From the NCBI GenBank assembly GCA_025558095.1, contig JAIVFI010000017.1:186001-250000 (forward strand): 64,000 bases of DNA, written 5' to 3'. A program made the position numbers and the translations under genes. Under the pieces are notes generated by a model. The model searched no databases. It saw nothing but the letters and a program-made list of their open reading frames with translations, and was not told the DNA's origin. Positions 45,882 through 64,000 of the stretch are shown in pieces. This DNA comes from Hyaloraphidium curvatum SAG 235-1. Taxonomy: Eukaryota > Fungi > Monoblepharomycota. Each line of letters starts with the position of its first letter. The stretch's first letter is position 1.

Positions 45882-46160
45882 AGCGGGAATGCATGGGTGA
45901 TCTCTCGTGATTGTGCGGACGGGCGGGCCGCGTCTTTCTCGCGATCGGGCGCGCGGGCGGGCCCTTCCGTCCGGATCGGACGCCTCGTCGGTTTCATCCG
46001 CTGGATCCGGTCCGCGCTCGGTCACCAAGGGATGGATTGGGAGACAGCGGGGAGTTAGCGCGGATCGGCAACCACCGCGGGCGGCGATCCTCCAGTCGGT
46101 CCGCTCCGTTTCCCGCCACACCTACCGACCGCATCGCCCTCCCTCCGGGAAACCGCAGCC

Positions 46161-46995
46161 ATGCCTGACAAGCCGACCACGATGGCCGTCGTCGTGGGTG
46201 CCCCCCGCGTGTGCCTTCGCGGCGTGGCCGACCGACCGACGCAACGCGCAGCTGTACGACGGTTTCGAGATGCTCGACACCTTCGGCCCCCTGGAGCTGT
46301 TCAACTACGTCCCAAACCTGCGATTCTTCGTCGTCACCGAGGACGGAAAGCCGGCGCGGATCTACGCCGGCCCGCAGAAGGAGGGCGTCAAGCCCGTGCT
46401 CGGCACCTCGGTCGAGGCGGAATACAGCTACGAAAACGCGCCCAAGGCAGACATCGTGTTTTTGCCCGGCGGCTACGGGAGCTTCCCGCAGGAGGCCAAC
46501 GCAAAGACGCTGGAGTACCTCGAAAAGGCGGGCAAGGACGCCAAGTTCGTCCTCACTGGTCCGTCCCCCCGCCGCTTCCCCTCCCCGCTCCGTATTGACC
46601 CTCGGATCGCGCAGTCTGCACCGGCTCCCTCATCCTCGCCAAGACCAGCCTCCTCCGCTCCCGCCGCGCGACGAGCAACAAGGCCGTGATGGCCATGCCC
46701 GGCCGCGTCGGGCCGCAGACGTACCCGGGGGTGGACTGGGTGCCCAAGGCGCGGTGGGTGAGGAGCGAGGGGGCGCCGGAGATCTGGACGAGCTCGGGCG
46801 TCGCGGCCGGTACGTCTTTCCCGAGCGGGTTAAAGGGCGGGCGCTGACACCAACGGGCCAGGGATCGACATGGCGCACGCCTTCATCGCGCAGGTGTGGG
46901 GGCAGGAGCTGGCGGACGGGATCGCGACGGGGACCGAGTACGAGCCGCACAGGGACGCGGCGTGGGATCCGTTCGCGCAGGAGTACAAGATTTGA
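46161..46995 (+). CDS. DJ-1/PfpI family protein
   Basis: LYDGFE.LD.FGP.E, DI..LPGG.G, VCTGS..LA, RWV, WTSSGV.AG.DMA; 3 introns. Confidence 0.9.
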
Positions 46996-47187
46996 GTCGA
47001 CGGCGGGAAGCATGAGGCGCGGTTTCCGGACGTCGACGGCGGGAAGCAGGGCAACGTACGCTTTGATTCGGCTGTTGCAGTACACATTCGGATGTCGCAA
47101 TTCCGCGCTCGTTCGTCCTTCTGCTCCCAATCCAGCTCAAACAGCCGGAGCACCACCTGTACCCATCCTGCAGTATCAATGTTCCAC

Positions 47188-49902
47188 TCAGTAGCTCATA
47201 TAGGTCTGAATGTCCCCATCACGAGTCTCATCCGCCTCTGGGATGCCCGCAAGCCGGATCACGACGCGGTCGGCAATCCTCCCCAGGGCCTGGGAAATCT
47301 CGTCGCTGACCCAACCGGGGCCCAGCTCCAAATCCGTTGCAAGCACATGTAGCACGTCCAAGCGGAGATTGGCAAAACCGCGGAAGGGACGCGTGAGGAA
47401 CGCCTGCTTCACGTTGGCTGCGTGCTGCTCCTCAACGTCCACGGCTTCCAACCCAAGATCGCGGATACGCACCACGCGTCCAATACTGGCCATGACAGCC
47501 GTTTTGTCCGCATCTTTCTGTGTCCTTTCAGCGTGGAAGTAGGCGCCGTCAAACTCCAGCATGACTCGATCTCCATCCCCATCAATGAAGTGAGCATCGA
47601 CGCGCAAATCATTTCCTGTCCTAGGGTGAGGTAGGACGTCCATCATGGCTTCGCAGCACGCTTGCACGGCCGCATCGGCATCTTTGATCCAGTCGTCTCC
47701 AAATGTTGCAAATAGGTATCACACGATCGCGTGAACCTCCGAGACAGAGCGACCGTGCAGCTTCTTGGCCAGCGCAGTGCAAAGACTTTTGCCATGCCTC
47801 CCGTAGCGTTGTTCTCGATCAGGGCACCTAGACATGACTGAGGTTTTGTGTGGGCACGTCCGGTGCGTCTCCTGGTGATGTTTCAAACTGCCTGGGTAGG
47901 CAAAGGCACGACTACAGCTTTCCAGTGTGCAGACATACGGACGCTCTCCCGTGTGAATCCGTTTGTGCATGACAAGGCTGGTGGAGTTGCTGAATGACTT
48001 ATTGCAGCTGTCGGAACTGCATTTGTAAGGGCGCTCGCCAGTGTGGCTCCGCAAGTGAACAGTAAGGTGAGCTGACTGGGAAAACATGCCACCACAGCCT
48101 TCAAAGCTACATGAATAGGGACGTTCTCCAGTGTGGGTGCGCAAATGGTACGCAAGATGACCATTCTGAATGAATGCTTCGCTGCAGCCTTCGAAACGGC
48201 AGATATAGGGCCGCTCACCCGTATGGACCCGCATGTGAGTGTCCCGGCTGCTTGACGTGACAAATGTCTTGCTGCAGTCTCCAAATAGGCAGGCAAAGGG
48301 CCGCTCTCCCGTATGTGTCCGCATATGAACCACAAGATCATTGGAACCCACAAATGCCTTGTCGCAGTGCTCAACATCACAGATATAGGGACGTTCCCTA
48401 GTATGTATCCGCTTGTGCTTGACAAGGGCACACAAGGTGGCGAAGGCCTTGCCACATTCTTCAAAAGGGCACATGTAGGGGCGCTCTCCAGTGTGAGTCC
48501 GCATGTGCACTGTGAGTTCAAAAGACGTTGTAAAAGCCTTTCCACAGCCATCAGAATCGCAATTGTACGGGCGTTCTCCCAGATGGAACCGTTTGTGCGT
48601 GGCAAGAGTGCCTGCCAGAGCAAATTCCTTGCTGCAACCTTCAAAATCGCACGCATAGGGACCCTCCCCGGTGTGGGTGCGCATGTGACCTGCAAGATAG
48701 TCCGGCCTCGAAAAGGCCTTACCACAGCCCTCGAATTGGCAGGCATGTGGACGCTCCCCAGTGTGAATTCGCATGTGCTTTGCCAGCTTAGCAGACTCCG
48801 TGAATGCCCAATCACAGCCTCCGAAATTGCACCTGTAAGGACGATCTCCAGTATGAATTCGCCTGTGTACTGCAAGGCTGCCGGAAGTACTGAATGACTT
48901 GCCACACCCTTCGAAATCGCATGCGTACGGGCGCTCTCCGGTGTGACTTCTCTTGTGTACGCGACGGGCACCTGCTTCAGTGAACGCCTTGCCGCATCCT
49001 TCGAAGTCACATTGATATGGCCGCTCTCCTGTGTGAATGCGAGCATGCTTGGTCAGATGACCTGAGCTGGAGAACGCCTTGCCGCAGTCCTCAAAACCGC
49101 ACGAGTACGGGCGCTCCCCCGTGTGCGTCCGCATGTGCTGAACGAGCTTTCCGGATTCACTAAAGGTCCGACTGCACCCCTCAAAACAACACGCATAAGG
49201 GCGCTCCCCGTTGTGGATGCGCTCATGTGTGCGAAGGTGAGCTTGCTGGGTGAATGCTTTGCTGCAGCCCTCATGATTGCACACGAAGGGGCGATCCCCA
49301 CTGTGGATGCGTTGATGCACGGCAAGGGCGTTGGGGCGGGGGAACGTCTGAACACAGTTTCTGCATTGGTACGGACGAGCGCTGTCGTGCGCTTCTTTGC
49401 AATGACTCGTTCGCTTCCGTTTGGATCCAAAGATGAGACTGCAGTTCGGCCACCGGCAGGGGAACCTGCCTGGGAGGTCCTCCACCATCAAAACTACCCC
49501 GCCGGCGAAATCCGAAGGCACGGATTCTTCTACCACGCACTCCGCATGGTCTGACGCATAGAAGCTCTCCGAGTCCGAGTCCGTTGCTGGAGCTGGTTCC
49601 GACTTGTCCCACAGAGCAGGAGACCAATCCGCGATGCTGTCGCGCCGGGCGCGCTTCGCCGGCCGGGCAACGGGGCCGTTCGCAACACTCGCATCTTCTT
49701 CGCTGTCGCTGGTCACGATCGCGTCCTCGGAAGCAGTTCGTTTGACAGTCCGTTGAGCCGCGCCGTCGGCGATATGTCCGGCGGAGTCGGGGCAGCCCTC
49801 GGCCGCCGGCGCCGCCCTCTTCTGCGGCGCCGTGCCACCGCCACCGCCCGATGCGCTCCCGCGCTTGGCGGCGGGGCCGAAATAGGCGCGGATGTCGGCC
49901 AT
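47188..49902 (-). CDS. 18x C2H2 zinc-finger array fused in-frame (across one TGA at 47719-47721) to a Vsr/DUF559/EDxHD-like endonuclease domain
   Basis: 18 fingers with TGERP-type linkers. The same frame continues after the TGA: [15 protein letters not shown]...LRVDAHF...[11 protein letters not shown]...KDADK...GRVVRIR. Intronless. Confidence 0.8.
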
Positions 49903-49945
49903 TTTGAGCCGTGGGATTGAGGTGGAGCGGGTGGCTGGCCGGTTG

Positions 49946-50165
49946 AGAGCGTCAGCCCGATGCCGCTGCGCTGCGACAAGTTCGCTCCGCACATCGCTTC
50001 CAAGCTTTCCTGACGATCCATCGACTTCTTAGCAGTTGATGGACTGGTCCGCATTTTGAGATCACCAAAAGGCGCCTCCTCAAGCCGCTTCGCACCGGAC
50101 GCCTCGCCAAGCTGCTAGATGAGGCACAACGATCGCCCAACTCCAAGAAAACCACAAAATCACGC
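49946..50165. repeat. Degenerate ~220-bp direct repeat, copy 1 (upstream of ZF-nuclease gene)
   Basis: Shares ACAAGTTCGCTCCG, ATCCATCGACT-N7-AGTTGATGGA, GAGATCACC, TTCGCACC, GCCAAGCTG and CCAAGAAA in the same order with 52834-53062. Confidence 0.8.
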
Positions 50166-50342
50166 CGGGTGCGCAGTCCATCCACCTCGGCAACTGATTG
50201 CTGCCCATCGTTCCCATGTTGGATTGACCGCAATGGAGGTCTTGTGACGTTGAGCGCGTCAGAGAGAGCACGATGAATAAACGCAGCAGCTTTTCCATTT
50301 CCATACACATAAGCAGACAGCAGATCACGCACACCCGCAGCC

Positions 50343-52355
50343 TCACGGGAACCCCGCCAGCTGCCTCGTCTTCGCCCCCCCCGTCCGCGCCAGCACCACG
50401 TCCACCTCGTACTCCGCCACCGGCCACCCGCTGGCCGGATCCCCCAGGTCGTCCCACTGGAGCAGGCTCCCGAGCACGTACCCGCTCCCCCACGCCAGCT
50501 TCTTGCCCTGCGTGCCCGCGGCGGGGAGCTCCCAGTTGATGCTCTGGTACGCCCACGACCATGCGCAGGGGAGGATCCAGCCGTCGCCGGGGCAGGAGCT
50601 CGTGAGGGAGGATTGCCCGCGCTGGTCCGAATAGGACGAGCCGAGCAGGGAGGAGGTCTTGGGGACGGTCTGCACGAGGCCCATTTCGTATCCGGAGCCC
50701 GTGGCAAGGAGGTTGTACCGCTTCGCGGGTGCCGGGGTCGCGGCGTTCCAGGTCCACGGCGACGAGGGCTTCACGGGGCTCGCGGAGCTGCGGAACCGGT
50801 ACTGGTCCGCCCACTCGACGAGCGTGATGGATTCACCGCGGCGGCCGTCGAATTCCAGGACGCCGTAGGGGGCGCGCGTGTCCGCTGTCGTGGTGCCCCG
50901 CGGGGCGGACGAGTAGTCCCACCGGATCTTTATCCGCGGCTCGTCGCGGCCCGAAGCGAAGCTCCAGGTCGTCGTGACGGGAATATGGTACCGCCTGTGC
51001 TTGGAGGTGTCGCGCGGGGTGATGGACCACGGGTAGGGCAGCGGGGTTAGGGTGCCCCAGCGCGGGTACAGGAGCGAGAAGGCGTGGCTCGCGGTGCCCG
51101 CCGCCGTGTTGACGGCAACCTGCGCGCCTGTGGCGTTGTTGAGCACGTACGCGCCCAGCGGCGAGTCGTCTTCGCCGTGCAGCGAGGCGATGGTGTCCGA
51201 AGCGCCGACGTCAAAGGTGCGGTAGTACTCGTGCCCGACGGGGTACCCGAACCCGGCGTCGGACCGTCCGGCGGACATCGATGCGACGACGAGCTCCGGT
51301 GGTGTCTTTGTGGTGTCGAAATAGGTCATTTGCGCCGCGAAGCCGCCACGGCCGTTTGCGAAGCGCGCGAGCGAGACGGAGCGCGCGAGGCCCGATGCGT
51401 CGCTCCAGGTGTAGCGGTCGCAGGGAATCCCGTCGACGAGGCCGGAGTCCACGCGCAGGAGTTCGCAGGCGGCGAGGGAGGGGGTCGGGAGGGCGACGGC
51501 GGTGTTGGAGATGGGCGCCGCGGTCTGGCATCCCGAGGGAGGCGGCGGCGGTGGTGGTTGTGGAGGAGGAGTCGTCGAGGCCCGCAAAGTGGTGGACAGC
51601 GTCGACGGTGTTCGAGTCAATGCTGTCGACGTGGTCGGCGGAGGTAAGGCAAGGGTCACGGTGGCGTCAACGGTGGTGGACGGGGCCGCCGTTGGCAAGG
51701 GCGCACCTGGCGGGACCGCCGGGGGCGCTGTGGTCGGCGGCACCACGGTGTTGATTGGCGGTGCATTTGTTGTGATTCTCCTCGTCGTTGTCCTTGCCGT
51801 CGACGTGGTCGGCGGCGGTGCGCTCGGCCTCGACGGCAGGCTTATCGAGTCGAGGACCACGGTGGCTGCCGCGTCCGAGGAAAAGACGACCGTGTCAAAG
51901 ACGGCGTCCCTCCACGACGCGGCAAACACGCCGGCCCTGCCAAAGGAGGCGAAGCAGCGGCGCAGCCGCGGTAGCCCGTTGGCGGCGGTGCCCAGGAGCA
52001 CGGCCGGCCGCGACGCAACCAGAGACAGCGGCACGCGCAGCGATCGCGCGCCCGTTCTCCTGCTCGCGAGGCCGACTCTGACGGCGGACAGGTTGTTCGC
52101 GGCGCCGAAGAATGCGAGGCCCGAGAAGGCGCCGGCCGACAGCGGCGCGCACCTCAGCCGGAGCTCGCCGCTCCGCTGGAAGCGCACACGGATGGCAAAC
52201 CTCCCGATCTTCGGCTGGGCCGCCGACCGGGCGTCAACCACAGCCCGCGTCGCCGACAGTGCCACGCCCGGACCCGCGCCATCCTCGAAGAGCACCGCGC
52301 CGGCCGCCGCGCCGACGCAGACAAGCGCAAGGAGGAGAAGGAGGACGCGGCGCAT
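50343..52355 (-). CDS. Intronless secreted two-domain protein (possible carbohydrate-binding N-domain, Pro/Thr linker, bacterial-like C-domain)
   Basis: Signal peptide MRRVLLLLLALVCVGAAAG; PT-rich linker; aromatic/Gly-rich globular C-domain (DRYTWSD...GFGY.V.HE.YR...GEDDSPLG...YQS.NW...KLAWG). Confidence 0.75.
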   Translation of the reverse strand: MRRVLLLLLALVCVGAAAGAVLFEDGAGPGVALSATRAVVDARSAAQPKIGRFAIRVRFQRSGELRLRCAPLSAGAFSGLAFFGAANNLSAVRVGLASRRTGARSLRVPLSLVASRPAVLLGTAANGLPRLRRCFASFGRAGVFAASWRDAVFDTVVFSSDAAATVVLDSISLPSRPSAPPPTTSTARTTTRRITTNAPPINTVVPPTTAPPAVPPGAPLPTAAPSTTVDATVTLALPPPTTSTALTRTPSTLSTTLRASTTPPPQPPPPPPPSGCQTAAPISNTAVALPTPSLAACELLRVDSGLVDGIPCDRYTWSDASGLARSVSLARFANGRGGFAAQMTYFDTTKTPPELVVASMSAGRSDAGFGYPVGHEYYRTFDVGASDTIASLHGEDDSPLGAYVLNNATGAQVAVNTAAGTASHAFSLLYPRWGTLTPLPYPWSITPRDTSKHRRYHIPVTTTWSFASGRDEPRIKIRWDYSSAPRGTTTADTRAPYGVLEFDGRRGESITLVEWADQYRFRSSASPVKPSSPWTWNAATPAPAKRYNLLATGSGYEMGLVQTVPKTSSLLGSSYSDQRGQSSLTSSCPGDGWILPCAWSWAYQSINWELPAAGTQGKKLAWGSGYVLGSLLQWDDLGDPASGWPVAEYEVDVVLARTGGAKTRQLAGFP

Positions 52356-52833
52356 CGCGGCGTCTCTCCTCCTCCACCTGTCGGCGAATCGATGCGGCGC
52401 GCCGCAGCACAGCTCTCCGAGGCGCGCGGTCGATCCTGGGCACAGCCCTCGCCACTTTTCCGAACTGCAGGTGACGTCCCTATGAAGGGAATCCGATGGA
52501 AGAGATCTCCGGCCGCCCTACTTTTGTGAGCACCATTGGTCGGGGGCGCTTCACAGGTACGCTGCCACTCGGCGCGTCACCAAGTGCGACTTGACAGGCG
52601 CCGGAATGCATGCTCCAGTCCGAATGAACAAGAAGCGTGGAAGCATGCTGTTCCGCGAGATGGAGCTTCCCGGCGCCTGTCAAGGGCGTGCGGGTTGGAA
52701 CGGGGTTCCTTTAGAGGCCCCTTTCCGTCCCCAATCGTCGCAATAGCATGGCCTAACCATCTGATTCCCGACCTCCTCTGTTCGTTCGAGAATCTGGCCC
52801 TATTCACCGCCTTGCGCGTCCCTGTAGAGCTTT

Positions 52834-53062
52834 AGAGCGCGCGATGCAGCTGCGCTTCAACAAGTTCGCTCCGTCCCCACCTCTTCTTCTCATTCTCTTC
52901 TTCTCCTTAAGAATCCATCGACTACATAGCAGTTGATGGAATGTTGCTTATTTGGAGATCACCTGAGGCGCCTTCCCCAGCCGATTCGCACCTGATTGCC
53001 CGGCCAAGCTGGCTACAGACCATCACCGCCCATCCAAATCCAAGAAAGACACAACATCGCGG
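52834..53062. repeat. Degenerate ~230-bp direct repeat, copy 2
   Basis: Colinear similarity to 49946-50165, including the hairpin at 52914-52940. Confidence 0.8.
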
Positions 53063-53174
53063 TTGCCATCTCTGTTCGATGATCGAATAAAGGCAAATGG
53101 TTAAAGCCTTAATTCTGCCTCTGCCTCGATCTACGCGGCGCGCCCCCCAACGGCTACTCCAAACAACCAAAACC

Positions 53175-54458
53175 ATGTCGGGCTCGACGTGCATCGCCTG
53201 CCAGGCGACCTTCTCCACTGCCGACGAGCAGCGCGGGCACTACCGCACCGACTGGCACCGCTACAATCTCAAGCGGCGGGTGGCCGGCGCCGCGCCGGTC
53301 GGCGAGGAGGAGTTCCGCGACCGCGTGGACGGTGCGTCCTCCGCTCACCTGTGCGACCCGGGGCTGACGGATCTCGCTGGCACGCAGCGCAGCAGCAGCG
53401 GACGAGGGCGGAGGCGGGCAAGGCGGCGTTCCAGAAGGAGTGCGCGGCGTGCGGGTGGGGTTCCCCGCAGCGGTGGTCCTGCGCCTTCTGACAGCACGCG
53501 AGCAGGAAGACCTACTTCTCCGAGAATGCGTACAACAGCCACCTGCTCTCCAAGCGCCACCGCGACCTCGAGGCGGCTGCCGGGACGGCGGAGGCGGCGC
53601 AGGCCGACGGGGAAGAGGAGGACGCCGCAATGGCCGAGGATTCTGGCACTCCCCAGGAGCCGCGGCAGACCAACTGGCGCTCCGCGCTCGCCTCGGCGGC
53701 GGACGAGGACGAGGTCGACGCCATCCTTGCCGAGAAGCGACGGACGGCCCCCCGGCTAGCCCCCGAAGCCTGCCTCTTCTGCCCGCTCTCGTCGACGACC
53801 CCCGAGGCCAACGTGGAGCACATGTCCCGCGAGCACTCCTTCTTCATCCCCTCGCTGACGAACCTCGCGGATCTACCGGGCCTGCTGCGGACGCTCGCGG
53901 ACGCGGTGACGGTGGACAACCTGTGCCTGTACTGCGGCTTTTCGGGCAGGAAGATGCACTCGGTCGAGGCAGTGAGGAAGCACATGCTGGACAAGGGGCA
54001 TGCGAGGCTGGGCGAGGATCTGGAGGAGATGTGCGAGGAGTTCTACGAGTTCGAGGACGACGCGGGAGAGGGCATGGAGGTGGACTTCTTCAACGGCCGG
54101 ACCGACAAGTGCGTTTGCCCTTTCCTCCAAGCAGTTTCACCCGCTGACCGTGCGCACCTTTTCCCGCAGACCCTACGTCGGCGACGACCAGCACCTCCAC
54201 CTCCCCAGCGGCGCCGTCGCTGCCCCCCGCTCCCTCGCGCGCTATTACAAGCAGAACCTCGTGCCCTCCGGCAACTCGGCCATGCACCGCATCCTGCACG
54301 GGTACAAGGCGCTCGGGTACGCGGAGGAGCCCGAAGAAGTCGTCAGGAAGCGCCGCGCTCAGCGGGCAGAGGCCAGGGGGAGGGCGCGATGGGAGTCGGC
54401 GATGGGGGAGAGGGGAAACGGGCTGCAGAAGCACTTCAGGGTGCAGATTCCGTTCTAG
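53175..54458 (+). CDS. REI1: Rei1/ZNF622 pre-60S ribosome biogenesis factor
   Basis: C..C...F.....QR.HY.TDWHRYNLKRR, HL.SKRH, CLFC...HM...HSFFIP, CLYC, AV..HM.DKGH, LPSG, Y.Q, HFR.Q; 3 introns. Confidence 0.92.
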
Positions 54459-61816: not shown

Positions 61817-63021
61817 ATGTCCGACGCACCCGACGCCGACGCCGCGTCCAAGGAAACCCTAGTCGCCGGCGAGGGCCAGCCTTGGGATGCGGGCGCGTCC
61901 CCGCTGCGGCGCACGTTGGTCGTCGCGTGGCTCAGGATGACGTTCTTCTTCGCGGTCATGGTACCCGCCGCCGCGATGGTGCTCGGACGGGGCGTGCTCG
62001 GGATCTATCCGAGGGCCGTCCAGTGAGTTCGACGCGGGAGAGGATGGGCAACGGGCTTTGACCGGGATGGGCAGCCTTTCGTACCAGAACATGTTCCTCT
62101 CTTGCGTCATGGCTTTTGCAGTATGCTGCTGGCGAGCATCGTTCGTCACCGACGTGCAGTACATGCTTCCGTTGCTGGAGTTTGGTGCCTACTTTTACAT
62201 CGCACTGGGTAGGTCCCGCATGCCGCCCGATCTCGAAGCCACGACGCTCACTCCGTTGCCGCGCACGCCGCTCAGTCGTCACCCTGTGGCTCTACACCTT
62301 TGGTTTCGCGAAGACCCTCCCGCCTCCCGACCAGAGCATCTCCCTGGCCCCGTACGACGGCCTCGGCATGGTGTTCTCCTCCCTCTACGTCACCGTCCTC
62401 GCCCTCCTTACGACCTTGCTCCGCTTCCCCAACCCCCCTCTCTCCCTCGTCCGCTCCCTCCCCTCGCTCCCCTCCTTCTTCGCAACCTACCCGCGCCGCC
62501 TGCTGTCCGGACGCCCCCTCTTCCCGCGGCTCTTCGGCCTCGGCGTCGTGCTGCTCATCTTCGTCCCCGTCGTGGGGTACCTCCTGGGGCCCGCGGCACC
62601 GGGCTACCGCTGGTTCCCGTACGGCCACCCGGAGGAGTCGGTGATGGCCGCCTTCTTCGCGAGCTTCTCGGTCGTGGCCGCCAAGGCCGTGCCGGACCTG
62701 TACGGCGGGTACGTGCTCTTTGCCGAGTTCTGGGCCGCCATGGTGGGTTCCCCGGCGAAGCCACGCGCCCGATCGTGACCGTCCGCGGCGCCAAGGGGTT
62801 CTTGCACGGGTTCGCGATGTCGCTGGACTCGATCAACGCGACGCAGGGCAACTCGGGATGGGAACACGTCATGGTCGGCGACGTCCTGCTCATGTGGGTC
62901 GCGCGCCGTACGGTGGACGCCTGCGCGAGAAATAGCATGCTCATCCGCTTCCTGCAGGTGGTGCATAGGGCTGGTTCTCTCGGCATACCATCCCGCGATA
63001 GGGAACCTAGCGACGTCGTAA
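61817..63021 (+). CDS. Multi-pass membrane protein; C-terminal part reminiscent of bacterial DUF6632-type proteins
   Basis: Many hydrophobic helices across ~5 exons; W...H..AM......H...GDV..L motif near the C-terminus. Confidence 0.55.
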
Positions 63022-63377
63022 GATGCGGAAGACGATGGGGGTGGGCCCTGGCCAGCGCTTTGGTCTTTGATGCGTATCCCGTTGCTGTATCATCGTTATA
63101 TCCTGGGCTCTGTCTTCTTGAAGAGTTTATTCTCTGCCTTGTTAACTTCCGACCGTTATCACGGCCCGCGCGCGCGGATCCCGGGAGGCAACGCGGCGAC
63201 AGCGGGTCGCCGACATCAGAACGTACTTCAGCAGCCGAATTTGAGCCCCGTTTCGTTCCTTTGCCCTTCGCGAACCCACGAGTCTTCCGGAGCGAGCTGG
63301 ACGGGTCGCGGCAACCAGCGCGCCGGACAAAATCGCGTGCCAAAACCCACTTGTCCGCCGTCCCCCTCCCCGCCGCG

Positions 63378-64000
63378 ATGCGGTTCATCGACGACGAGGG
63401 CCCGCCCGCGGAGCTCCTTGGGCCGCGGCGCCGCCCCGCCGCGCGCCGGGCGCCGCCGCCGCTGCCGAAGCGCGCGCGGGAAAACGAGCGCGAAGGGGAG
63501 GAAGACGCGGCGCGGGGGGAGAAAAGGGACAATGGCGCGGGCGGTGCGAAGAGGGCGAGGAGGGAGGGCGGCGGCGGGGTGGCGGACGCGCCGCCGGACG
63601 TCGGGGGGATGTCGGACGCGGGGGACGGCGGGCGCGGGTCGGAGCCCTCGTCGGACGCGGCGGACGGCACCGAGGACAGCAGGCCGCCCGACGGCCCCGA
63701 CGGCAACGCCTCGGACGGCTCCGATGCCGGCGGCGGCCGCGTGCGCTGCCAGTGGCCCGGCTGCGTGCAGACGTTCGCGTCGACCAACAAGCGCTCGCGG
63801 CACGCAAAGACCGCGCACGACGCCGAGAGGCCGCACAGGTGCCGCCGCTGCGGCAAGACCTTCGCGCGGACCGGCGCGCTGGCGACCCACGCGGCGGTGC
63901 ACAGGGGCGGCGGCGGCGACCCGCTGGGGTGCCCCGAGGAGGGGTGCGGGAGGCTTTTCCCGGACGCCAACGCGCTGGCGGCGCACGTGCGCGCGCACCG
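63378..64000 (+). CDS. C2H2 zinc-finger protein, paralog of the 49902 gene; runs off window end
   Basis: Open frame to the window end. GRVRCQWPGCVQTFASTNKRSRHAKTAHDAERPHRCRRC matches [39 protein letters not shown]. Confidence 0.85.
   Translation, partial: MRFIDDEGPPAELLGPRRRPAARRAPPPLPKRARENEREGEEDAARGEKRDNGAGGAKRARREGGGGVADAPPDVGGMSDAGDGGRGSEPSSDAADGTEDSRPPDGPDGNASDGSDAGGGRVRCQWPGCVQTFASTNKRSRHAKTAHDAERPHRCRRCGKTFARTGALATHAAVHRGGGGDPLGCPEEGCGRLFPDANALAAHVRAH

Follow-up and report, generated by a model that had tools for sequence, protein, structure and literature searches.

A 64,000-nt stretch of the genome of the monoblepharid fungus Hyaloraphidium curvatum SAG 235-1 (contig JAIVFI010000017.1, positions 186,001 to 250,000; hereafter the window) carries on its minus strand, at 47188..49902, a gene in which 18 tandem C2H2 zinc fingers are followed, in the same frame but beyond a single TGA, by a domain resembling the Vsr-type nucleases. 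It belongs to a family of six copies on six contigs of the 31.9-Mb, 55-contig assembly, and as far as sequence searches reach this family is known only from H. curvatum and one environmental cluster. The explanation that best accounts for the whole, with a probability of roughly 0.6, is that these are natural finger nucleases, C2H2 arrays joined to a Vsr-type nuclease domain, and that the window copy is freshly broken. The copies are named here for their contigs (C17, C15, C7, C10, C8, and C28), the window being C17:186001-250000.

A preliminary description, made from the letters of the window, had drawn attention to two minus-strand open reading frames (ORFs), 47719..49992 and 47188..47667, said to share a frame and to be parted by one TGA. 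They do share it, and the TGA at 47719-47721 is the single stop between them. The likely start codon is the ATG at 49902, which coincides with the end coordinate of that first call; the terminal stop is at 47188-47190. In order of translation, the gene consists of a 148-aa low-complexity region, both acidic and basic, opening with MADIRAYF (49459..49902); the 18 fingers (47863..49458); a conserved linker (47722..47862) with a C-x-H-x7-C Cys/His motif and then a helical segment, GRSVSEVHA; the TGA; a predicted Vsr/DUF559/EDxHD-like PD-(D/E)XK nuclease core (47386..47718), delimited from Pfam, a PDB profile, and structural models; and a C-terminal helical extension with a conserved terminal D-I-x-x-Y/F motif (47191..47385). 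As assembled, its predicted products are a 727-aa finger-only protein and an orphaned, N-terminally truncated nuclease ORF.

The other copies show that the fusion is real. All six were found alike by search with the post-stop piece and with a family profile. C15 (L002:64..2037) is an intact ORF with 11 fingers and the domain, annotated by NCBI as a single 621-aa protein (KAI9022648.1); C7 (L005:1324..3114) is also intact, with 596 aa from its ATG, 10 fingers of the C-X9-C type and the domain, and is likewise a single NCBI protein (DFJ74DRAFT_659948). The metagenome protein P0004 resembles the C7 copy along fingers, linker, and domain alike, at 38% identity. Since these three join fingers and domain in one ORF, the fused layout first proposed from the window holds for them, although in the window copy itself it is broken by the TGA. 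Of the remaining copies, C10 has seven fingers and the domain, with five further fingers upstream in a different frame; C8 has 11 fingers, with internal duplications in the array and a one-base frame change within the nuclease domain; and C28 (L006:1012..2049, minus strand) encodes 345 aa, its domain preceded not by C2H2 fingers but by three Cys-His knuckle repeats. Lesions are therefore present in three of the six: the TGA in C17 and the frame breaks in C10 and C8. The tandem knuckles of C28 (C-E-H-G-x6-C-x2-C-G-G) match phrog_37414, of unknown function, with an E-value of 1.5e-4.

The window copy has exactly 18 C2H2 fingers, as first counted. Sixteen of these have a 30-aa period, with C-X4-C-X12-H-X3-H spacing and a TGERPY-type linker; finger 1 is atypical in its H-X4-H and finger 2 in its C-X2-C. 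Membership in the C2H2 class is clear from Pfam (zf-C2H2, E 4.9e-72; zf-H2C2_2, E 1e-98). Among 48 family fingers, the zinc ligands and conserved hydrophobic positions have a positional entropy of 0-0.7 bits, and the maxima of 2.3-3.2 bits fall at helix positions -1, +2, +3, +5, and +6; values are also high (2.7-3.4 bits) at three non-contact positions, namely those that follow the first Cys and the first His and the one at the linker end. The preliminary picture of mostly 30-aa units with variable recognition helices is thus borne out. Poly-finger arrays with TGERPY linkers typically bind DNA.

Downstream of the fingers the translation contains all of the motifs originally reported there, including KDxxK and GxVVRIR. 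With residues numbered on the piece window:47191-47715 (minus strand), the conserved core residues are D40, E54, D56, G57, H61, D68, K71, G79, R83, and R85. In family alignments at 28-38% identity, D56, G57, H61, D68, K71, G79, V81, R83, and R85 are invariant, together with the upstream Asp. The invariant motifs of the module as a whole are the C-x-H...C knuckle, G-x-S-x-x-E-x-H-A, the Asp of the strand ahead of the core, D-G-x3-H (in most copies with a Glu before it), D-x-x-K, and G-x-V-x-R-x-R-D. Every copy has one Cys-His knuckle between the last finger and the nuclease.

The matches that place this domain near Vsr, DUF559, MTES_1575, and the EDxHD enzymes are individually weak, but they converge. 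Pfam MTES_1575 matches five of eight family members (best E 2.5e-4, at 21.8 bits against a cut-off of 38.2), DUF559 matches two (19.3 bits against 20.6), and Vsr one. By language-model features, a score of 0.93 is reached by DUF559 clusters. When the entire genome was scanned in six frames with PF18741 and PF04480, nothing but members of the finger-nuclease family came back, and phage tblastn, PHROGs, and NCBIfam searches returned nothing significant. The top profile match among PDB sequences (E 0.01) is to the I-Bth0305I catalytic domain, 3R3P. By this alignment, and by the catalytic roles given for I-Bth0305I and Vsr residues (PMC3239194), E54 corresponds to I-Bth0305I E206 (F62 in Vsr), D56 to N208 (H64), H61 to H213 (H69), and D68 to D222 (D97). 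D40, which falls outside the aligned stretch, would correspond to D196 (D51) from its position on the preceding strand. Counterparts can accordingly be proposed for Vsr D51, H64, H69, and D97, the H64 site being Asp here and Asn in I-Bth0305I.

Structure prediction points the same way. In AlphaFold2 models of both the window piece (predicted local distance difference test, pLDDT, 71.5) and the C15 linker plus domain (72.4 overall; 80-90 over residues 45-220), an alpha-beta-beta-beta-alpha-beta core is followed by a helical extension, an order that fits the PD-(D/E)XK fold; in the intact paralog the linker is modelled as part of the nuclease module. Foldseek gave no significant match to the models. 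VIA structure-match lists are dominated by PD-(D/E)XK nucleases (PaqCI, Can2, Card1, Bax1, McrC, AspBHI, SfsA, NucS) and include Vsr itself (1cw0, Z 5.4) and 3r3p (Z 5.0, 93 of 98 residues aligned). The closest shapes to the linker-plus-nuclease module in the ESM Atlas belong to bacterial and phage DUF4379 zinc-ribbon-repeat proteins, some of them with DUF559 (TM score 0.51-0.56, with 160-170 residues aligned). The C-terminal domain can be assigned with moderate confidence to the restriction-endonuclease-like fold, in its Vsr/DUF559 branch; this, with the conservation of the Vsr/EDxHD catalytic positions, upholds the preliminary reading of a nuclease-like domain.

A nuclease fold need not imply a working nuclease. 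The family could consist of DNA-binding regulators in which the Vsr-like domain is catalytically dead and serves for dimerisation, DNA binding, or regulation, like the inactive PD-(D/E)XK domains in ERCC1 and FAAP24; ERCC1, FAAP24, and FANCM are indeed among the fold matches. The window also holds, 14 kb away, a GC-rich poly-C2H2 paralog without a nuclease module (62775..64000, plus strand, continuing past the window to C17:250751; L026:276..2252), so that a finger array alone is a viable protein. This paralog begins with the same two unusual fingers as the family (C-X4-C with H-X4-H, then C-X2-C) and closes with an acidic tail. Conceivably it is the host finger gene from which the family arose, or else a copy whose nuclease has been lost. 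However, dead domains usually lose their catalytic positions, whereas the Asp, Glu-x-Asp-Gly, His, and Asp-x-x-Lys that match those of Vsr and I-Bth0305I show no or almost no variation in the 28-38% identity alignments, which makes the regulator explanation improbable.

It is also conceivable that the domain is a RAP/FASTK-like RNA module and that the fingers bind RNA, as those of TFIIIA can, with transcripts (organellar ones, for example) as the target. The RAP module of FASTKD4 (Z 6.2) and a Toxoplasma mitoribosomal protein (Z 6.6) are among the structural matches, and RAP is a PD-(D/E)XK family present in eukaryotes (PMC3424549). But Pfam RAP (PF08373) does not match any family member at E up to 1, while MTES_1575, DUF559, and Vsr do, and the best sequence match of solved structure, I-Bth0305I, is a DNA homing endonuclease. 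With linkers of the TGERPY type, moreover, the arrays are of a kind that typically binds DNA, and an RNA-directed function seems very improbable.

At the interruption, the window copy reads GTG TGA TAC where C10 has GTC TGC TAC, with Cys in place of the stop; C15 has AGC (Ser) and C7 GCG (Ala). The aligned residue of the C15 model, number 58, lies inside a confidently modelled helix (residues 50-64, pLDDT about 90), and the break therefore falls within a folded module. Beyond it, 175 codons continue without another stop or frameshift and with every invariant residue kept. Lineage-specific changes in this part number 17, compared to 15 and 22 in the two closest sisters, a similar count that suggests a recent lesion. 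Introns in the PCNA gene of H. curvatum are 49-58 nt long, with the signals GTRNGT, CTGAC, and CAG; removal of the TGA by splicing was considered and rejected, since the sole in-frame GT..AG candidate (57 nt) is without those signals and would cost 19 conserved codons. No selenocysteine insertion sequence (SECIS) or other Rfam match was found at E up to 1 within 46000-50500, and with Cys, Ser, or Ala as the aligned residues, in a helix and with no redox motif, a selenocysteine at this position was judged unlikely. As neither a credible intron nor a SECIS was found, the window copy is most likely a recent nonsense mutant, newly disabled, and most simply by a TGC (Cys) to TGA change.

Some of the same observations could be taken to mean that the window copy is really intact, a full-length 18-finger nuclease whose TGA is an assembly or base-call error, a strain polymorphism, or a codon that is read through or recoded. 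Opposite the TGC of C10 it makes the classic Cys/Sec pattern, and the post-stop codons are clean, with their invariant residues and without an excess of lineage-specific change. Selenocysteine is in use in certain early-diverging fungi, and among stop codons UGA is the one most prone to readthrough. On the other hand, besides the missing SECIS, other copies have Ser or Ala here, and the site is not a redox one; in the NCBI annotation the post-stop piece stands as a protein of its own, of 152 aa; and in GC-rich DNA long open frames occur by chance. An intact window copy is on these grounds unlikely, and the nonsense mutant remains the preferred reading.

Relatives outside the genome are few. 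A phmmer search of 1.84 billion proteins returned only the window piece, one paralog, and one environmental cluster (P0003, which includes P0004); word-indexed protein searches returned only H. curvatum's own proteins, and two metagenome DNA scans found no relatives. P0004 is encoded on a 2135-bp contig from JGI metagenome sample 3300059473. There the finger-nuclease gene is followed, as the next called gene downstream, by a fragment of 57 aa that matches N6_N4_Mtase weakly; a restriction-modification-like pairing was considered but rejected, as the two N6_N4_Mtase genes of H. curvatum adjoin no family copy.

Within the genome, nucleotide homology among the copies (about 65% identity) ends with the coding sequence, and no shared flanks or flanking (terminal) inverted repeats were found. 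The copies are free-standing genes on six nuclear contigs, not the intron- or intein-borne genes of the EDxHD setting. A location as passengers of a transposon or Crypton is rejected for now, given the lack of shared flanks, of inverted repeats, and of a consistent recombinase neighbour. One tyrosine-recombinase-like neighbour does occur: a 483-aa ORF (L004:1897..3348, minus strand; C8:527683-529131) with a weak Phage_integrase match (E 0.0018) lies tail-to-tail with the frameshifted C8 copy, 6 nt from it. It may be a Crypton-like element, and has five further matches on C35, C26, C30, and C10, none beside other family members. The C15 and C28 loci share a 127-nt stretch at 80% identity (L017:3434-3560 and L020:4147-4270), upstream of the C15 gene and about 280 nt past the 3' end of the C28 family ORF, which is probably a short dispersed repeat.

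The gene also stands out in base composition. Positions 47100-49500 of the window form a GC trough (0.53-0.58, compared to 0.68-0.72 in the flanks), and GC content at third codon positions (GC3) ranges from 0.62, the value of the window copy, to 0.75 among the four copies free of frame breaks, as against 0.87 in the neighbouring ORF 50343..52355. Because three of six copies are lesioned, the finger arrays differ and contain duplications, GC3 is low, and the taxonomic range is narrow, a dispensable, fast-evolving gene, whether selfish and homing-like or engaged in an arms race, fits better than a housekeeping factor. The neighbours of the gene in the window are an unassigned 670-aa ORF and a DJ-1/PfpI-like gene; the recognizable segment of the latter (45907-46689, plus strand, E 0.0015) is directly downstream and apparently split over frames, so probably spliced. 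A second GC trough is found at 52500-53400 (0.56-0.60).

Both ends of the predicted protein carry a further short motif. The C7, C8, and C28 copies (loci L005, L004, and L006) end in QTSMRKYF, QSDICSYF, and QNPITLYL, conforming to Q-x-x-[IM]-x-x-Y-[FL], and the other copies have D-I-x-x-Y/F in this place, DIQTYM in the case of the window copy. The two PIP-box-like (PCNA-interacting protein) motifs of the window copy are at the C-terminus (47191-47214) and at the N-terminus, in MADIRAYF (49879-49902), both on the minus strand. As a terminal sequence pattern this suggests a PIP box and tethering to PCNA, whose own gene in H. curvatum is split by introns.

If the intact copies are functional, the finger array of C15 or C7 would dock the protein on a long DNA site, nominally of 3 bp per finger, and the tethered Vsr-like domain would nick or cut DNA nearby by way of an Asp-bound Mg2+ and a His acting as general base. 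Cleavage might be that of a monomeric nickase, like Vsr, or of a dimer making double-strand breaks, like I-Bth0305I. The general build, C28 apart, is 7 to 18 fingers, a Cys/His knuckle and helical segment as the join, and the predicted nuclease domain at the C-terminus. A target of roughly 50 bp and reprogrammability, as supposed in the preliminary description, are hypothetical. That C15 and C7 are active natural zinc-finger nucleases, aimed at specific long sites by rapidly diversifying arrays, and serve as homing-like selfish genes or as a programmable system of genome defence or rearrangement, can be proposed only tentatively; in that case the terminal Q-x-x-[IM]-x-x-Y-F may be the PCNA tether.

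Several points weigh against a family of natural finger nucleases with a freshly broken member. The Vsr, DUF559, and MTES_1575 matches are all under the Pfam gathering score, the PDB profile match is at an E-value of 0.01, and the highest structural Z, 7.0, is in what the tool calls the "middling" range, so that support for the fold itself is moderate. No counterpart of Vsr E25 or I-Bth0305I E170 was identified, the helix ahead of the Asp strand having no invariant Glu in the family alignments. Ser, Thr, and Gly abound in many of the recognition helices, and base-specific contacts may as a result be weak; for such helices, and for C-X4-C fingers, simple finger codes predict targets unreliably. 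The copies show no hallmarks of homing (no intron, intein, or visible target duplication) and no transposon ends. The TGA, finally, could stem from misassembly or be polymorphic among strains.

The literature searched contains no description of a natural C2H2-array nuclease, or of a C2H2-Vsr fusion. To our knowledge, fusions of a C2H2 array to a nuclease are known solely as engineered reagents. What is already known, from phages and bacteria, is the combination of repeated DNA-binding modules with a Vsr-like nuclease, in the EDxHD enzymes and the DUF4379-DUF559 proteins. If the intact paralogs do cut DNA, evolution would have reached the engineers' modular solution independently, and would have supplied a compact Vsr-type cleavage domain that is pre-adapted to a place behind C2H2 arrays. 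It would then have to be asked whether long-site nucleases serve a fungal nucleus in homing, in defence, or in making programmed breaks. Meanwhile the family, with intact members beside newly broken ones, provides a natural series for the birth and death of such genes.

I-Bth0305I and its EDxHD relatives are similar in that a C-terminal Vsr-like nuclease is tethered to repeated N-terminal DNA-binding modules (3R3P; PMC3239194); the positions of E206, N208, H213, and D222 have conserved counterparts in the family, and that of D196 is matched by position only. The EDxHD enzymes, however, come from phages and bacteria, are housed by group I introns or inteins, and have NUMOD or helix-turn-helix (HTH) modules, whereas the H. 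curvatum family consists of free-standing fungal nuclear genes with C2H2 arrays in place of the NUMOD/HTH repeats, without a match to E170, and with two additions, a Cys/His knuckle and a helical extension at the C-terminus. To Vsr, DUF559, and MTES_1575 the resemblance is in the layout of the core (Asp strand, x-D-G-x3-H, D-x-x-K/R, G-x-V-x-R) and in the weak Pfam matches, but Vsr stands alone as an enzyme, nicks at T:G mismatches, and has a zinc site of its own. The Vsr/DUF559 clade was listed as prokaryotic in a 2012 survey of PD-(D/E)XK proteins (PMC3424549). The uncharacterized bacterial and phage proteins of the ESM Atlas that combine DUF4379 with a DUF559-like domain likewise have repeated zinc modules and then a Vsr-like nuclease; their zinc modules are of treble-clef or zinc-ribbon type, not C2H2, and no sequence-level link to them was found in the protein, phage, or PHROGs searches.

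Among eukaryotic nuclear proteins, yeast HO and the R2-type retrotransposon proteins are site-specific nucleases that pair zinc fingers with a nuclease domain. HO is derived from the LAGLIDADG/intein enzymes. In R2 a Cys/His knuckle precedes a PD-(D/E)XK-like nuclease, but this has the canonical PD..D/ExK, and a reverse transcriptase stands between fingers and nuclease; Pfam scans of the H. curvatum family found neither a LAGLIDADG domain nor a reverse transcriptase. In domain order there is an artificial parallel: engineered zinc-finger nucleases also consist of a modular C2H2 array and a C-terminal nuclease of PD-(D/E)XK fold. Theirs is the FokI domain behind three to six fingers, while the H. 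curvatum family places a putative Vsr/DUF559-like domain behind seven to 18.

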